DNA of 59,029 nucleotides, from assembly GCA_038496445.1 (NCBI GenBank), contig JALMLS010000501.1, positions 1 to 59,029 of the forward strand, in the 5' to 3' direction. Shown here piece by piece: positions 1-59,029 of this stretch. How positions within the stretch are numbered: position 1 is the stretch's first letter; each line of letters starts with the position of its first letter. Under the pieces are notes generated by a model. That model did no database searches and was not told the DNA's origin. It saw only the letters and a list, made by a program, of their open reading frames with translations. A program made the position numbers and the translations under genes. The stretch comes from Trichosphaerium sp. ATCC 40318. Lineage: Eukaryota; Protista; Tubulinea.

Positions 1-1688
1 CCCCCCTTCTACGCCACCAGCACGCCGTCCTACCGCACCCTGGGCCGAGCCGGGGCGATCGCGCAGCGGCGGCTAAGGCAGTTTAGCGCCATCCATTTTC
101 GGCGCGTCCCAATTCGGCTGGTGAGAAGTTACTCACTCCTTAGAGGATGACGACTTCCATGTCCACCTTCCAGCTGTCTAAACTGGAACACCGCCTTCGT
201 TGTCTTGGTTACTGCCTATTCGGGCGCCTTTGCTGCTGCTCGCGTTTAAAACCGTCTCGTCAGTCCTGCTTATCAAGACCGGCCCAATAGGGGTCCACCG
301 TCTCGGTGACCACAGCCATTCGGCCTGTGGTCGGTCGCCTCTTATGTGTTTGATAATAGGTCGATGGCAACTTTGGCCTCCGATACCTCTTTCCAGTGGC
401 TCTACGAGACGAGACCGGCGTCACGGACCCCCTCTATCCTTAGGGATACTTCGAACGGTACCAGCTACGTTGGCAGCTCGTTTGGTCTCTCGCCCCTATA
501 CCCAATGTCCGGCGAGCGATTTGCACGTCAGCAACGCTACGGGCGTCCAGCGGGATTTCTCCCGCCTTCCCCCTTTTCGGGTATAGATCGCTACCTTTCG
601 GGTATCGCCCAACGTACTATCGCCTGCCAAGAGAACAACGCCGGAGATGGCAAAGTGTATCTACTTTGGTGTGACGTGTTTTTAATTACTTGCGTAACAA
701 AAACATGATAATAGCATAGTCGGTTTTTTATGTCGATCTTTGCAAACTTATATAGTGTAATACGTTTGTTTTTATATAAGAAGAACTTGGCCTAGGAGCT
801 TATCCTTGGCTTCATTTCTGTGCGGGTTGGAGGTTTGATCTCACCCTCGCACGCTCGGCGAACTCCTTGATCCGTGTTTCAAGACGGGATACACGGAGGC
901 CATGGCCCAATAAGGGCATAGAGCCTCATTGAGGTTGTGGACGATGAATGACGAGCTTCGTTCCTTTCGGAAGACGTACATTCGGAGGTTTCAGTAATTT
1001 CAGTGAACCAACATCATTTAAAGGTTTAAAAGTGCTTTTTGATGTCCTTTCAACCAAACCCACGTTTTTATGCTTTTCAGCTTGTAGGATGGTGTGGACA
1101 GCACGATTAGCCAGTATGACTTTTTTGTGTTGGTCACCTCTATTACCTTCCCCTCGACGTTTTGTTTCATTATAATCTTCCAGGGCACAAGGCCCCGGTC
1201 GCTTTTCCCTCGCTACAAGAGCGTCTGCCATGTGCAGATTAGGTGCAGGGCACCTACGTACTCCGTGCCATTTGTACCCTTGCCGGCTTCGGGTCTTTTA
1301 ACCCTCTATCGAGGAGTGCTGTTTCAGTCTTCCCTCACGGTACTGGTGCGCTATCGGCCACCTCCCGATACTTAGCCTTGCCGGGTAACCTCCCGGTAAC
1401 TTCGTATGGCACGGCCAAACCATACTACTCCTGGACGATGGGACTCTATTTCCTCGGTTGACAGCGTACGGGGCTCGCACCCTCTACGGCTACGACTCGT
1501 GCGTAATTCCCGTCAACGTCTGGAAGAGCCACCACGCCTTAGCCCACAACTCCGATGCTAGGCTCGGATTCAGGCTTGAGCTTGTCCCCTTTCGCTCGCC
1601 GCTACTCAGGGAGTCCCTTTTGGTTTCCTTTCCTCTGCCCCAATGATATGCTTAACTTAGGCAGGTCGCCAAGTGTAACTCAGGACGC
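1..1688 (-). rRNA. 28S rRNA: 28S (LSU) rRNA, 5' portion; runs off the window edge
   Basis: The reverse complement has eukaryotic LSU landmarks: TAAGCATATCA..GAGGAAAGGAAACC, GAGTAGCGGCGAGCGAA, ACCGATAGCG..AGTACCGTGAGGGAA and CCCGTCTTGAAACACGGA. Its 5' GCGTCCTGAGTTAC pairs with the 5.8S 3' end. Confidence 0.95.
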
Positions 1689-1891
1689 AAGTTGTGTTTT
1701 TTTAATGCTTTCAGTTCAGTATGTAAACCAACCTTCCCTCTAAAGCTTCGCTTAAGTAAGCTAGGCATGAGTTCTGGAGGAACGTCACTTCCGGCAATTT
1801 ATTAATTAGTTGTGGCAACCACTTTCTTTTTTAGAAGATTAAGTGTGTACACCATACGCAGCACCAAATAAATTTAGTGTTTGTTTTGCTG
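1689..1891 (-). other. ITS2
   Basis: AT-rich spacer between the mutually pairing 5.8S 3' end and 28S 5' end. Confidence 0.75.
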
Positions 1892-2056
1892 GCGTCGCTG
1901 AGTCACGCTCCTTTGCCTGTGATTCGTGAGAATACAGAACGCGGCCTGAGGCATTCGGCAATGCCACCTTCAGATGAGAGCGATTCCGGTGGCTGGTTTC
2001 ATAGTGATCCATGGCCTTCTTCGGGGGAGGTGCCTAACCGTTCACCGACAAGGTTT
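1892..2056 (-). rRNA. 5.8S rRNA: 5.8S rRNA (very divergent)
   Basis: GC-rich block of about 165 nt between 18S and 28S. CCGAAGAAGGCC sits at the position of GATGAAGAACGC. The 3' GTGACTCAGCGACGC is complementary to the 28S 5' end. Confidence 0.75.
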
Positions 2057-2295
2057 GGTTTCTTTCGAAAATCTTGACGTTCTTTATAGTCGTGCCACGA
2101 CTGTGTTTTGGTTTGCCAAAATGGCGGTTGTGGAGCTGGCAGATATACAAGATATCACCACAGCAGAGGATGATTGCATCTTTCACTTACCGAGGTAAGA
2201 TTAGATTTACCAAACCAGAGCTGATACTCCAATTTTTTTCTTTTAAACTTGGTTAAAAGTTGGTTTAATTGCTTCTAAGGGTTTAATACCAATAG
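2057..2295 (-). other. ITS1
   Basis: Spacer between the 18S 3' end and 5.8S. Confidence 0.75.
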
Positions 2296-4951
2296 TATTG
2301 ATCCTTCAGCAGGTTCACCTACTGAAACCTTGTTACGACTTCATCATCCTTTATGAGCGCAAGTTCGAGCAGGTTCGATAACCGGCAAGCCGGTCGTCCC
2401 CCCTGGTCTCACTCGCACCCACATCGGTCGATGCGACGGGCGGTGTGTACAAGCAACAGGGACAGATTCCAGGTGCGTTGATGACACACCTGTACGAGGC
2501 ATTCCGCGTTCGTGGCTACAGTTACAGCAACCAGTCCCTAAGCACGCATGTGTCTTTTCGGAGAAGCAGCATTGAGCACACTTAACATCCAAATCGACCA
2601 CACGGTGCGCTTTCATGTATTTTTTTATGAACATTGCAGAAACTTACTTCATAATAAAGTTTGCCTTGGTAAAGATATAATCTTCCAAGTCAAAGCATTT
2701 AAGTGAAGAAGAAACCTTATTTGTTAATTTGAAACGATCCACAGCTCTTTCAATGTTTACACTAAGGAACAAAGTCCAAAGATGTAAGTTTTCATCTAAC
2801 AGCGCTTCTCATCTTAACATTAAAGGAATTTAACTTCCTAAAAAGCCTCGACGAGGGGGTTAACTCTTTATATTAAGGTTCAGGACAGACTTTGTTTTTG
2901 AAGGTGGTAGTTTCCGAAGGTGCGTTTAAGTGTAGTCGTATTTAGATAATTAAATCTGAGGTTTAACTCGCTGTCGTGAAGAAGTGTTCTGGCGGTTTCA
3001 GGGCTTGCCCGGATGCCTGTTCGGCCCAGGAACCCGTTGAACTAAGCAGTGTAGGCCGCGTGCGGCCCGGAATATCTGGGGGCATCCCGGATCTGTTATA
3101 GCCGCCGCTTCTTACGACTTTTCGCCGTCAGTCCTGCACAGGGGTCCCGCACGAGGCGGGGGAATCAATGTGACAGTAGCGATCTCGCCCGTTATCGGAA
3201 TAAACCTGACAGATAAGTCCACGAGCCTAAAACGACCATGCACCACCGTTAGCTAACTCGGAAAAGACCCTTCAGTCTGTTCGTCCCCTTAGAGCGTCCG
3301 ATCCCGGTAAGTTGTCGCGCGTTGAGTCAAATTGAGCCGCAGCCTCCAGAGCCTGGTGGTGTTGCTCCGTCAATGCCTTTAAGTTTCAGCCTTGCGACCA
3401 TACTTCCCCCCTGGGCCCGATTACTTCGGTTTCCCGTGGGAACGGGCCCCGAGCCTTGGTTTGCCCGGCGCCCATTCAGTCGGCATCGTTTACTGTGGAG
3501 ACTACACGGGTCTCTAATCCGCTTCGCTCCCTCCACCATCGTTCTAGATCACCGGCCACGCCCTTGCAGAGCGCCTTCGCTTCGGGTAGTTTGGATCAGG
3601 TCAAAAGATTTCACTCCTCGCTGATACCACACTCTCTACCCCGTACGCACCTAGTAATCGTGTGTTCTTTATTAGTGTGAAGACTAACTCAAGTTTTTCC
3701 TCAAAGTACTTTTGTAATTCACAATGTTTTTATTCCCTTAATGAAGAACATGAGTTTTCACTCAGACTTGCATATCAGGATATTGTTCATACTTAGTTAA
3801 AATGAGACTTGAGCGTCGCACTTGGTAAAGTGTTGTTTTTGTTTTTTTAAAGCCCAATTCCAGGATGCTGGTGGGTGGCATAGCGGCCGAAGCCTAAACT
3901 GACCTTGCGTTTGAGCGAAGCCATTTATGCCTGGTCGGGCGATGAAAAAGAGTCGGGGGGTTTATGTCAAGGAGTAAACTCCTATCTAAACCTTGTCCCT
4001 CTCAGCTGTGTCGTTGTTTGGACTGCGAGCGCTTTAACAGCAACAGCAAAAGTATAAGCTTTCGGAGTGGGTGTTACCGCGGGTGCTGGCACCCAACTTG
4101 TCCTCCAATAGTTTCTCAGGGCGACATTCAGTTGCCCCTCATTGCGACGACCGGTTTAAATACCGGCCTCGTTACACTCAGTCGCTGGCTCGATTTGCAA
4201 TCAATGGCCAAGTTACGCGCCTGCTGTTACCCGTAAGTACAGGGGCCGTATCTAATGCCCCTTCTCCGGGAACCGAACCCTAGTTCCCCGTTACCCGTCA
4301 CTGCCGCGGTAGGCCGTTACCCTACCGCCTGGCTGATAGGTCGGCCGCCCTTCCGACTCGTGGAGGGGGAGAACTCTCAACTTTATATCGATATGATCTT
4401 TTTTATGAAGAAGCACATTCAGCGAAGGATCGAGATTTGAACAGTGTTCATTTTTCTTTCACCTAGTTTCACTTATGTAAACTTTAACAATTTTTTTTTA
4501 GAAACATGTCTAGTCAGAGAGAACTCCTCATAACTCCATCGCATGCCCCAACGCCGCTCTTCCCGACGGAGTACGGACGCCGCTTCCTAAGGGGAGGCTG
4601 CTTCCCTTGGCGAACCAAGATGGGATCGGGTGATCGTCCGCTCCTGAGCGTTGGATGCGACCGATGGGTCCTTGCAGCAGAGGGGCCCATCGGCAGCGCT
4701 AGGCGCATTACGTATTAGCCGCAGGTTTCCTTTAATCCCGGTTATCCGCGGGGGAGGCCACGAGTTTTGGTTATAGTGCGTTTAGGAAAACAAGTTCCTG
4801 TGTGCAAAATGACGTGACCATTATTAGTCTTGTCGGGTGGGTTACGACCGTTTTAAGGAGCCGTTTGCGGCTCCGAGGATACCTCTTTGCTGAGCTTGCA
4901 TGGCTTAATCCTTCGAGAAAGCTTATCACTCCTGGCAGGCTCAACCAGGTA
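2296..4951 (-). rRNA. 18S rRNA: 18S (SSU) rRNA, about 2.65 kb, with long AT-rich expansions
   Basis: Starts TACCTGGTTGAGCCTGCCAG. Contains GATTAAGCCATGCA, GTGCCAGCACCCGCGGTAA, GAAACTTAAAGGCATTGACGG and TTGTACACACCGCCCGTCG. Ends AAGTCGTAACAAGG..GTAGGTGAACCTGCTGAAGGATCAATA. No anti-Shine-Dalgarno. Confidence 0.97.
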
Positions 4952-54912: not shown

Positions 54913-57900
54913 TTAGTGGTACAATCCGTTTGGAGCTCCATTTTGAGCTTCAGTCTTATTTTGACTCCCAGAAAATGATTGCACCTATATCATACGTTTA
55001 ATATAAAGGTTTTAAACTACAGAAAATACAAAAAACAAGAGACATCCTGTAGAGATGGAAAAAAAAAGCTGTTTTTTGCCAAGTTTTGGTTTTTTTTAGT
55101 ACCTGTAGAAGAAGTTCTCTGGCTGTTTCGTCAGTAGCAAAATGTGTTCTAATAGGTTCAAGTAATCTGTTAATTTCACGAATTAAATTTCGTCTCAAGT
55201 CTGAAGCAGTGATAAAGCCTTCCTAAAAGAAAAAAATAAGTTTGTGTGAAAAAAAACAAACAAAAAGGACAGTCGCTAGTACTAGGTCACATAATTTTCA
55301 CTCCGAATGGTTACGGGGCCGCAATATATATCCATCGGTAGTGTAGAGTACATAATATTTGTTTTTGAATAAAAGAAAACGTACACTGTAAGCTTTAGTG
55401 AAATCTTGTACTGCTCTAATTTCTATTCTCTTTCCATTTTGTGTATCGAAAACGACTGGAAGGTTTATGATGTTACCATTTCTTGTTTGTACATTAGGAA
55501 TCACAAGGTATTGCATCATTTCTGCACAAGGATTTCCTACTACCTATACAAACACTTGAGCAACTGACCGACTTTTGAAAAAAGTAAAAAAAAATGACAA
55601 AACTCGTACTTGTTTCTCAGGACAATAAGCGTTCATGACCTTTTGCTTAACAACAGCGGGTGTATCATCAACGAATATAGCTGCATCAGCTTTACTTTTA
55701 CTCATCTTACTCTTGCCATACAGGTCACTACAAAACAAAAACTATTAGACTATCACGTGACTTTTTGTTGATTTACAAGGATAAAGAGCTAACAGGAGTG
55801 ATACCTGATGTTTGAAGAAGAAAAAAAAAAGCGTCAAGGTAAAAAGGAAGGTAAAACGCTCAGGACAAGCGAAGAATTTGAACAAATAGAGCGGTATTCG
55901 CTGCAACTTGAGAAAATAAAGCTGCTGGTTTTTTTTTTGAAGTCAGTCGTACCTTATAATTGGGTTTGCTAGTACAATAGGTTTTCTGTACTGTCCTCCT
56001 GACTTATCACAGTATGCTCTAGCCATGTTTATAACTTTTGTTTGATCTGTTCCCATTTGACATACATCAGCGCCTAGAAATAAGGCATCTGCTGCTTGCA
56101 TACAAGTATACATTGCCATAGAAGCAGATAACTCATCCGTTGGTTCTCTTCCCATAATGACAGAACAGTCTTTGACATCAGCCAAATTAAATCTAATAAG
56201 AAGTAAGGAATGGTGGTGAAGGCACAAAATCAGAAAATCTCAAAAAGAATGAAGGTTGTAAAGGGTACTTTGTTGAAATATCAATGACTTGTGACCAATA
56301 TTTATCAGCATATTTTTTTTGTTCTTCTGATGCCCATAAGAATTGAACACGCGATAAATCTAGACCAGATGCTTTAAAAACTTCAATAAAATATTGTCCA
56401 ACAATCTTAATCTTTGATTTATCTCCACCCAACTAACAAAGAAAACAGTGAGCAACCGAACTCCAAAACGAACTAAAAGTCAACCATTTTTCACTTAAAA
56501 AATATCAAACAAAGTTGTTTGGGTTATAGTGGGATCCTTGGGTTACTATTTTTTTTGCTATCGTACACCTACCTTATGATTCATATATGCGAACCAATCG
56601 GCTATTAAAAATAAATATGTAAAACCAGAGGACGTAAGCAATTGAACCATATACTTCTTTGTAAGTATCTAAAAAAACAACACAGGGGTTAAAACACGTT
56701 GAGAACAGATGTGACTGCTTTCAAGTATTTGAATATCATCTAGTGTACCTGTGCTATTGTCATACGCCCACTAGGTTCGCAACCATCAAGTGCAACAGGA
56801 TTTCTACTAATACGAAGTAGTTCTTTAAACTCTTCTACACCACTGCACTCGACAGCCCATCGTGTACATCTATTTAATCTGTCATCGACAGTGAGTGTAG
56901 AGTACGGTGGCGGCAAAGAATATCTAGAGTTTGCAGGATTTGTAACATTCTTGAAGCTCTCAAAGAGAGATACGGGTTTATCAAGCAACTACGTAAAGTC
57001 AAAAAAAAACATCAACACGAAGAGGACTATCTCGAATCTAAGTAATGTACCTCAAGAGCTCTTTTGCAGCAACCATATTCTAAAAACCGTTTCTTTTTGT
57101 CAACGAGAGCGTAAGACTTTTCTATATACGTCCTACATACCAAACGAGTTAGTAATGATACCAACTTGAATTTGATAAAAATGAAAAAAAAGAGAAAACT
57201 TACTTGATTGGGTTTCCAACAGCCTCTAGTACTTCCTCAGCAAGGTTTGGATACTATTATTAAATATCAGTAAGCGTCCAAACAATTGGTTTGAAAACGT
57301 GTAGTTTACATAGGCTAGTAACAGGGAATTAAGGAAATAAAGGAGGCGTACATTTATGTTAAAGTTAAGTGAAATAGCACGATGAAATAGCTGAGCAGTT
57401 CCAGAATTTGCAACCCAATCAGGAACAATACATACATTAGCATCACGGAGTGTCTAAGATAAATATTAACAGATGTACAACCTACGTTGTTAAAAGCTTT
57501 TCATTTTGGCGTACACACTGTACTGATCCAGAATCGTCGCCCACCAATGCACCAGCTGATGTGACAGTACCATAAGGATTGTTTGCTCCACATACGAGAT
57601 ATCTACAACCATGTTAGCAATGCTTTGACTACCGAACTTATTACCTGTCTTTGACGTCTCTCCATGTTGTATGTATCATAGATTGTACAATATCGTTACT
57701 CACTTGATAACGCAATGCACAGGGACTAAAAACTTCTGCCTGCAAGCACAAAGAATGTCAACAAAAACTAAGAAAATTTTAAGATTTGCTCGATGATTAC
57801 CTTTGTACAAGCTAAAAACTGTGCAAGAAACTGTGCGTTACCGACAATTGAAAAATTTTGTGTTCTTGTGACAGCATTAAATTTTTTCTTTTGAGCGGGA

Positions 57901-59029
57901 CTCAAATTGCAGAAGAAGTTTTTAGCACTTTCAGCTATTCGTTTTGGAGAACCTTTAGACATCATCAGCTTTTGTATACGCCTGTAAAAATGACATATTA
58001 GCATCATGTAATGATACATGTTGTTTTGTATTTAAACTCACGCTTGACGTGCACATAATACATCATAGATGTCTAAACCATTATGATCAAAAATGTACCT
58101 TAGAGAAAAAGGTTAGCAAAAAAGTAAAAGGTGATGTTCTATTCCTATTCAAAGACTAACCCATCCTTGTCACATAAGGCGACGACCTTAGCTATATTTC
58201 TATGGACCAAATAATAAGCAAGCGAACTACCAACAGCACCAAAACCTTGAATGATAACACGGAATTTACCTATTCCATAAAAGGTACTGTTAAATGGTGT
58301 AACAACAAAGGTTCTTTTATGTACCAAGACCAGCAGGGTTTGTAAGAGTTATCGCTGTGCGTATAGCTTCTGATATACCATAGCCTACAGAACCCTATTT
58401 GTAACGTTGTTAGCATAAGCGGAACGTAAAAGAATAACAAGGTAACTTTTAAAACAATAAATACAACATCGTACTTCAATGAGCGGGAAAAACTTTTCTT
58501 TACATGCTGGATGTATAATTATAGAGGATAAGTTTCCAGCGCGATTTGGTTGTCCAGTAGCGCGTGAAAATGTCTGTGCTAGTACATGTCTAAATGAAAA
58601 AAAATCAATTGATGTAATTAAATTGTGAAAGAATTACTACAAATCACATACTGCATTGTTGGTAATCCCAAGTCATTTTGAATAACTTGTTCTATAAACC
58701 TGTCATCTGTATTTAAATCTCCTGCTGTAACCCATACATTACTCAAAAGAGTCTTATTATCAATAATGAATCGGCGAAGAACCTGTTAATAGACAATTAA
58801 TGTCTACTTTCGAAAAAAAGAAAAAAAAAAAAAAGTCGTCGTAAATGACGTACTTCTTTTGCCCTGGCATCACGATGATTAAATCGAATACCTATCTTTC
58901 TTTAAAATCAATGTGAGGTGAGGTGACGTTTCATATTTTCATAAGGGAAACGCAAATGTGCTACCAAAAAACGAAAACAGCAATGTGCGTTTTTATAAGC
59001 GATTTTTTAACGTGTTACCACTTACAGAA
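54913..59029 (-). CDS. Fusion of a Glu/Leu/Phe/Val dehydrogenase-like domain and a tyrosyl-tRNA synthetase-like domain (5' end outside the window)
   Basis: Dehydrogenase motifs AGDLNT, VGYG, IQGFGAVG, FSPCA, CGANNP and PDWVANSG. TyrRS motifs DGCEPSGRM, IADWFA, FLWAS, MQAAD, QMGTDQ, KMSKS and AYCP. Linker exons splice in frame with no stop. Confidence 0.85.

Follow-up and report, generated by a model that had tools for sequence, protein, structure and literature searches.

A multi-intron gene on the minus strand of contig JALMLS010000501.1 from the marine amoeba Trichosphaerium sp. ATCC 40318 (Amoebozoa), at positions 54913-58895 of the 59,029-nucleotide stretch analysed here (the window), encodes a protein in which a dehydrogenase-like half is followed by a half resembling tyrosyl-tRNA synthetase (TyrRS). 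This downstream half is a class Ic TyrRS homologue of the archaeal/eukaryotic (plant/protist) type, with catalytic and anticodon-binding domains. Judged from its residues, it is probably not the enzyme that charges tyrosine in the cell, and the reading preferred here, which stands roughly an even chance of being right, is that it has become a repurposed amino-acid- and ATP-binding module that does not charge tRNA and forms the C-terminal part of a dehydrogenase fusion. A repurposed domain best fits the combination of a kept fold, dimer region and backbone- and ATP-binding motifs with a rebuilt hydroxyl ligand, pocket walls and acceptor surface. Its non-canonical character is further supported by the canonical site found in other fusions of the same kind, by divergence focused on the catalytic core, and by expression and purifying selection of the gene.

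The class assignment is based on profile and fold comparisons. P0001, which comes from the 2015 transcriptome MMETSP0405 of Trichosphaerium sp. ATCC 40318 and is identical to the spliced model from MNHK to the stop, matches Pfam PF00579 (2.9e-30), as do exon 4 (1.2e-10) and exon 5 of the TyrRS-like half. Residues 111-403, a range that begins downstream of Leu67 and Thr77, were modelled with AlphaFold from P0001 and an alignment of 74 rows; the model has a predicted local distance difference test (pLDDT) score of 89.6 and a predicted template-modelling (pTM) score of 0.83. Its best matches are the TyrRS of Phaseolus vulgaris (7sc6/8zmi) and Plasmodium falciparum (3vgj/7ror), at 37-41% identity, a template-modelling (TM) score of 0.83 and a root-mean-square deviation of about 2 Å (2.1 Å). 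These plant and apicomplexan enzymes share with the Trichosphaerium domain its domain order, KMSKS, MQxAD and G-x-D-Q. They differ from it in reading YDGFEPSGRMHIAQG where it reads LDGCEPSGRMTIAQI and NLKRxxRC where it reads NLADVKDC, and, unlike these cytosolic enzymes, the Trichosphaerium domain stands behind a dehydrogenase.

Residues of the TyrRS-like half are numbered from its first codon at 56988, and all coordinates given for it refer to the minus strand. A sequence-only reading of this DNA had placed remodelled TyrRS motifs within 55640-56800, and every motif it quoted is present there once the introns are removed. The pocket and signature motif reads LDGCEPSGRMTIAQ (56790-56749) and is followed by an 80-nt intron and then by Ile81 (56668-56666); the spliced protein thus reads VALDGCEPSGRMTIAQ, with ILTKK after the join of exons 1 and 2. 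In a phmmer comparison with solved structures, ICYDGFEPSGRMHIAQ of P. falciparum TyrRS pairs with VALDGCEPSGRMTIAQ, which, together with the spliced model, bears out the proposed changes of the signature His to Thr and of the pocket Tyr to Leu. Specifically, Leu67 (CTT, 56790-56788) occupies the Tyr position, breaking the pair of residues that holds the tyrosine hydroxyl, and the Asp partner (Asp202, the Asp of MQAAD, 56101-56087) is kept. Thr77 (ACA, 56760-56758) makes the class I signature T-I-A-Q instead of H-I-A-Q, and Ile81 replaces the family Gly. The pocket walls carry smaller or different residues, with Trp changed to Leu at 101 (56608-56606), Ile/Val to Ala at 203 and Phe to Cys at 70 (56781-56779). 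In the alignment to plant TyrRS, YPCMQCAD...GMDQRKVN pairs with YTCMQAAD...GTDQTKVI (ending at 56030), so that the change of DQRKVN to DQTKVI (56047-56030), also noted from the letters, holds; it includes Ile221 (56032-56030) in place of Asn.

Much of the site is nevertheless intact, as the same reading had said of the MQAAD Asp and KMSKS (55708-55694), both of which are present in the spliced model. The kept residues comprise Glu71-Pro-Ser-Gly, Ala103-Asp104, Asn110, Lys112, Tyr195, Gln199, Asp202, Gly214, Asp216-Gln217, Lys219, KMSKS and Asp347. Among them are all the ligands of the amino-acid backbone (Tyr195, Gln199 and Gln217, the equivalents of Tyr151, Gln155 and Gln173 in Methanocaldococcus jannaschii TyrRS), which are invariant in the family. 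In the anticodon-binding domain, Asp347 is the equivalent of the G34-binding Asp, Thr344-Ala345 stand for the family His-Pro, and Arg349 stands for Lys. By motif equivalence, we take Leu67, Asp202, Thr218 and Lys219 to correspond to Tyr32, Asp158, Arg174 and Lys175, respectively. Tyr32 and Asp158 hold the tyrosine hydroxyl in the M. jannaschii enzyme, and their replacement opens the pocket to other substrates (PMC9499402, PMC11723616), in agreement with the earlier statement that position 32 is a specificity site in engineered variants.

The rarity of these substitutions is apparent from an alignment with 146 relatives that span the domain. At position 67, Tyr is found in 146 of 146 aligned relatives and in 169 of 169 occurrences of the pocket motif in relatives, and Leu occurs only in the Trichosphaerium protein. 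Position 70 is Cys here and Phe in 145 of the 146; position 77 is Thr here, against His in 142, Thr in two and Asn in two; and Ile81 and Leu101 face Gly in 130 and Trp in 121. Ala203 stands where 143 relatives have Ile or Val, Ile221 where all 146 have Asn, and Asp248, just ahead of the KMSKS loop, where 141 have Gly. Altogether the domain breaks 10 of 56 near-invariant columns (at least 95% conserved), compared with 0 for the median relative among the 146 (mean 0.76, maximum 10), and its family-profile score of 404 bits, against a median of 540, is the second lowest of 147. Similarly, against NCBIfam NF006330 (cut-off 220 bits) the partial protein P0001 (profile positions 77-337) scores 188.4 bits, compared with 246.6 for the same stretch of the canonical fusion P0016.

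The His-to-Thr change is also seen in stand-alone metagenomic TyrRS relatives with the signature T-F-A-Q-C (P0009, P0072 and P0245, together with P0272, P0273 and P0275), two of which, P0009 and P0245, carry Leu or Val at the Arg174 equivalent. This group may represent another lineage of non-canonical TyrRS paralogs.

A further set of changes affects the surface that faces the tRNA acceptor stem. Asp172 (56179-56177) replaces an Arg present in 141 of the 146 relatives, Asp175 (56170-56168) an Arg or Lys present in 144, and Thr218 (56041-56039), the Arg174 equivalent, an Arg present in 135; Lys219 is kept. By the same motif equivalence, Asp172 and Asp175 lie in the helix that in the M. jannaschii enzyme carries Arg129 and Arg132. 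Counted by residue, three positive charges are gone from this surface and two negative ones have appeared. In M. jannaschii TyrRS, Arg174 reads C1, Lys175 reads G72 and Arg132 assists through water, a system conserved in archaeal and eukaryotic TyrRS (PMC1934993). The sequence-only reading had proposed either an altered substrate or a non-aminoacylating paralog; the acceptor-stem losses, which it had not mentioned, favour the second branch, and its interpretation as a whole is supported in part, with the His-to-Thr change proving weaker evidence than it had supposed.

These substitutions belong to a gene with extensive transcript support. The eight exons of the TyrRS-like half were set by eye and by script, and all seven of its introns match CT..AC joints (GT-AG on the minus strand) in spliced contigs assembled from the public runs X1, X2, X3 and X5, which come from four studies. 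Four introns of the upstream half have RNA joints as well (57131/57203, 57253/57352, 57602/57645 and 57738/57800). Within the window, a single open frame of 773 codons runs over both halves and across 19 GT-AG introns, and the 5' end of the gene lies beyond window position 59029. The join between the two halves (57051/56988) is bridged by no contig of these runs; the transcript P0010 spans the homologous linker between dehydrogenase and TyrRS halves. An exact look-up of contigs encoding P0001 returned nothing, and the spliced junction of exons 1 and 2 had no match in a scan of metagenome contigs. The idea that the TyrRS-like half is an independent gene with a start codon of its own was considered and rejected, as no Met precedes Met76 of the module and the frame runs on from the upstream exons. 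Donor sites often begin with GTAC, and the shortest of the 19 introns in the window part measure 42 nt (57603-57644, supported by RNA).

Comparison of the window with contigs from other runs, which represent strains or diverged copies at 90-99% identity, gave 21 differences, all of them synonymous and at third positions; six fall in the TyrRS half and 15 upstream. The gene is expressed and under purifying selection. These data also bear on the notion that the unusual residues are sequencing or assembly errors, or that the copy is dead and decaying, an explanation whose probability is close to nil. It can draw on one unlocated mismatch at the very end of an X3 contig, near 56791. The codons of Leu67 and Thr77, however, are at least two base changes away from any Tyr or His codon and therefore do not represent read errors, and an X1 contig (1105 nt, from a 2015 run) shows zero differences over 56749-56858, so that the critical codons pass the check for errors, with P0001 supporting the model from MNHK onward. 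Combined with the 773-codon frame, the spliced contigs of four studies, the 21 of 21 synonymous differences and the identical protein of 2015, this rules out an artefact or pseudogene for practical purposes. In run X2, over window positions 56819-58249, contigs more than 99% identical to the gene occur together with contigs 90-97% identical, all differences being synonymous; these two identity classes suggest that the organism has a second, diverged copy or allele of the gene.

The exons of the TyrRS-like half follow its domain order. Exon 1 (56749..56988) holds the linker, strand beta-1 and the class I signature, and exon 2 (56573..56668; joints 56668/56749 and 56432/56573) holds Ile81, Leu101 and the conserved A-D-W-F and N-x-K. 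Exon 3 (56269..56432) covers the CP1/dimer-interface region. Exon 4 (55953..56192) carries MQAAD, DQTKVI, Asp172, Asp175, Ala203, Thr218 and Ile221, and exon 5 (55610..55727) carries Asp248 and KMSKS. The anticodon-binding domain begins in exon 6 (55385..55543), its helices continue in exon 7 (55103..55222), and exon 8 (54913..54984) ends with the stop codon. Twelve upstream exons (57051..58895, minus strand) encode the dehydrogenase-like half from the catalytic-loop motif onward. This half belongs to the Glu/Leu/Phe/Val dehydrogenase-like (ELFV) type by profile match and by comparison with P0016. Judged against P0016 aligned to solved glutamate dehydrogenases, it retains the Gly-rich loop region of the catalytic Lys, the Asp of P-A-x-D, GFGAVG and the C-terminal PDWVANSG block. 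The ELFV-like rather than TyrRS-like character of this upstream half also rules out that the TyrRS-like domain is the second half of a pseudo-dimeric double TyrRS.

The two-domain architecture is common to the Trichosphaerium protein and a wider family. When the whole library was searched by phmmer with exon 4, and then by words using P0016, about 43 ELFV-TyrRS fusion clusters (P0016, P0276-P0311, P0057, P0100, P0105, P0107 and P0124) emerged from metagenomes, Logan assemblies and two NCBI assemblies, with annotation no more specific than 'tyrosyl-tRNA synthetase'. Literature searches on dehydrogenase-TyrRS fusions or on Trichosphaerium returned nothing relevant, and the ELFV-dehydrogenase-TyrRS fusion family is undescribed in the literature. 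The pocket Tyr and the signature His are present in each of the 43 other fusions, and the canonical AYDGFEPSGRMHIAQG core is broken only in Trichosphaerium; at the sites altered there, the others keep Tyr, Phe and His and mostly Arg and Asn. DNA fetched for two of them, P0107 and P0276, shows uninterrupted open reading frames, whereas the Trichosphaerium gene has at least 19 introns. Such intronless canonical fusions lie on L001 (NCBI GCA_020063865.1, a 10.2-kb contig), where the neighbourhood is dense, occupies both strands and mostly lacks Pfam matches, and on L002 (JGI 3300037466, a 257.7-kb contig); candidate hosts of these contigs are compact protists and giant viruses. A giant-virus origin of the fusions was looked for in viral collections, where nothing matched except an unfused TyrRS on viral contig L003 (1.26 Mb).

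Phylogenetic placement offers an order for the changes. Maximum-likelihood analysis places the Trichosphaerium domain and P0010 as sisters, with a Shimodaira-Hasegawa-like approximate likelihood-ratio test (SH-aLRT) value of 100, and these two group with all six fusions present in the tree in a clade of 15-16 rows (SH-aLRT 95). P0010, a EukProt Trinity transcript truncated at its 5' end by adapter, is about 50% identical to the Trichosphaerium domain and shares with it Ile81/ILTKK, Asp172, a non-Arg residue at 218 (Ile218 in P0010), Ala203, Ala226 and the junction linker. It keeps Tyr67, Phe70, His77, Trp101, Arg175 and Asn221; on the ortholog question raised by the sequence-only reading, the replacements of Tyr and His are shared neither by P0010 nor by the 43 other fusions. 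Since P0010 combines Asp172 and Ile218 with an intact pocket and signature, the pattern suggests that acceptor-stem contacts may have been lost first, in the common ancestor with P0010, and that the pocket and signature would have been rebuilt later in the Trichosphaerium line.

The location of the divergence within the protein is also informative. In canonical fusions the TyrRS half is better conserved than the dehydrogenase half (48-61% vs 43-54%). The Trichosphaerium dehydrogenase half shows the usual identity (43-54%, and 70-80% in blocks), and its TyrRS half reaches 44-48%, about 10 points low. Identity to the fusion consensus is 58% for the beta1-signature segment, against 79% in canonical fusions, 57% against 83% for the second pocket segment, and 48% against 75% for the KMSKS loop region. 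The smallest fall (63%, against a mean of 69% in canonical fusions) occurs in exon 3, that is, in CP1, which is taken to be the dimer interface. By these comparisons, the divergence is concentrated in the catalytic core.

This distribution raises the possibility of a pure scaffold, in which the TyrRS-like half would be dead both as a catalyst and as a ligand-binding domain and would be kept for the dimer interface that holds the dehydrogenase assembly together. The best-kept region relative to canonical fusions is indeed CP1, and the catalytic regions are the most eroded. However, Tyr195, Gln199, Gln217, Asp202, G-x-D-Q and both KMSKS lysines remain intact, which is unexpected after long ligand-free drift; the pocket changes are not random and tend toward smaller or hydrophobic residues; and the six strain differences in the TyrRS half are all synonymous. 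A scaffold of this kind is accordingly regarded as unlikely.

Under the preferred reading of a repurposed amino-acid- and ATP-binding module, the Trichosphaerium lineage would have taken the module out of tRNA charging and rebuilt it as a non-translational domain. It would have given up its specificity for tyrosine but would still bind an amino acid, probably an aromatic or hydrophobic one, and may bind ATP as well, whereas the acceptor end of tRNA-Tyr would no longer dock. The module might then serve the fused dehydrogenase as a ligand-sensing domain, a dimerising domain or both, and tRNA-Tyr would be charged by a separate enzyme. A precedent is provided by HisZ, a paralog of histidyl-tRNA synthetase (class II) that forms a separate subunit, senses an amino acid and regulates the metabolic enzyme HisG. 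The residue pattern fits, as far as residues can indicate function, a HisZ-like class in which tRNA charging is lost, amino-acid binding is kept and a metabolic partner is served; the likeness is one of functional analogy and implies no homology.

Several observations weigh against this reading. KMSKS, the ATP/ribose motif G-x-D-Q and all backbone-binding residues are intact, a state that would equally suit a working adenylating enzyme. The acceleration of the TyrRS half is moderate rather than dramatic. Two otherwise canonical fusions, P0296 and P0298, read DQLK and also lack the Arg174 equivalent, so that this Arg is possibly dispensable. Active bacterial tryptophanyl-tRNA synthetase (TrpRS) normally has Thr at the first position of the signature, as in the class Ic E. 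coli enzyme, where TIGN stands in the place of HIGH (PMC10201369). Because TIGN is normal in active TrpRS and the same change occurs in a few TyrRS relatives, TIAQ alone is no proof of a dead site; bacterial TrpRS belongs to a different subfamily. Finally, no second Trichosphaerium TyrRS appears among the 120 matches listed, in a search that is blind to TyrRS of the human/fungal type.

Some of the same features would be expected of a working synthetase of new or relaxed specificity, one that adenylates an aromatic or hydrophobic amino acid other than tyrosine, perhaps one that the dehydrogenase makes, and passes it to tRNA or another acceptor. KMSKS, G-x-D-Q and the backbone ligands are compatible with such activity, and a signature beginning with Thr is functional in TrpRS. 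Leu67, Leu101 and Ala203 would enlarge and de-polarise the pocket, and in engineered M. jannaschii TyrRS the hydrogen bond to the hydroxyl is lost, and the pocket opens to other substrates, once Tyr32 is replaced (PMC9499402, PMC11723616). This explanation is nonetheless distinctly unlikely, given an acceptor-stem surface with two charge reversals from Arg to Asp and a change from Arg to Thr, the replacement of the invariant Asn221 by Ile and of Gly248, ahead of the KMSKS loop, by Asp, and the retention of Asp202, the second residue of the hydroxyl-binding pair and one that most engineered variants change; additionally, no candidate acceptor is known. More speculative still, and quite improbable, is a two-step make-and-activate enzyme outside normal translation, in which the Leu-for-Tyr pocket would adenylate a non-tyrosine aromatic made by the fused dehydrogenase and pass it to a non-canonical acceptor such as a dedicated tRNA, a carrier protein or a small molecule. 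Such an enzyme would be a natural counterpart of the engineered 'orthogonal' synthetases, a suggestion that is an equally long shot.

The converse proposal is that the protein is an ordinary housekeeping TyrRS that tolerates its substitutions and serves as the only cytosolic tyrosine-charging enzyme of the cell. The fully canonical TyrRS half of the other roughly 43 fusions could play a housekeeping role there, and the lack of a second Trichosphaerium TyrRS among the 120 matches is in keeping with this proposal, within the limit that a human/fungal-type enzyme would have escaped that search. The invariance of the pocket Tyr in 169 of 169 relatives, the loss of the acceptor-stem arginines and the second-lowest family score of 147 make it very improbable.

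Known systems resemble the Trichosphaerium protein, understood as a repurposed module, only in part. The double TyrRS of Leishmania and Trypanosoma (3p0j; PMC8319005, PMC5370408) likewise places a TyrRS module in a larger functional chain with partial loss of the catalytic apparatus. Its partner, however, is a second TyrRS copy, and its dead copy lacks KMSKS (ARAVL in its place), whereas the Trichosphaerium module is joined to a dehydrogenase and has an intact KMSKS, with its changes in the pocket, the signature and the acceptor surface. Engineered M. jannaschii variants, which are also among the structural matches of the model, likewise have Tyr32 replaced, but they usually change Asp158 and keep the tRNA-binding residues; the Trichosphaerium protein keeps the Asp and loses the tRNA-binding arginines. 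Several engineered variants may carry Y32L; a literature search for an engineered Y32L/I159A variant returned nothing.

The significance of the gene lies in this combination. Repurposed paralogs of aminoacyl-tRNA synthetases, such as HisZ, PoxA and the dead TyrRS half of trypanosomatids, show that translation enzymes are recruited into metabolism and regulation. The fusion family provides a natural before-and-after series, from the intact canonical fusions, through P0010 with its pocket kept and its acceptor-stem arginines gone, to Trichosphaerium, where the pocket and signature are rebuilt as well. The Tyr replaced naturally here is the residue that engineers mutate to alter TyrRS specificity, and the protein could turn out to be a synthetase-derived allosteric sensor of amino acids or to have a new adenylating activity.

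Two other unusual TyrRS proteins were encountered among the relatives. P0032 (763 aa; a Logan/ENA contig of 32.8 kb) joins a pyridoxal phosphate-dependent decarboxylase of the aromatic type to a TyrRS that reads AYNGFEPSGRTHIAQAA and has KMSKS, and represents another way in which an enzyme of amino-acid metabolism is fused to TyrRS. P0002 (753 aa) is a double-length TyrRS of the plant/protist pseudo-dimer type with two full copies, the first with KMSTS and Gln at the Arg174 equivalent and the second canonical.

The opposite end of the window carries ribosomal DNA. A unit on the minus strand at 1-4951 comprises large-subunit rRNA (1-1688, cut by the window end) and small-subunit rRNA (2296-4951), the latter measuring 2656 nt against a model of 1831 positions. 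The G+C content of 47-51% at the window start, compared with about 37% elsewhere, is explained by this unit, and a protein-coding region lies less than 50 kb from it on the same contig.

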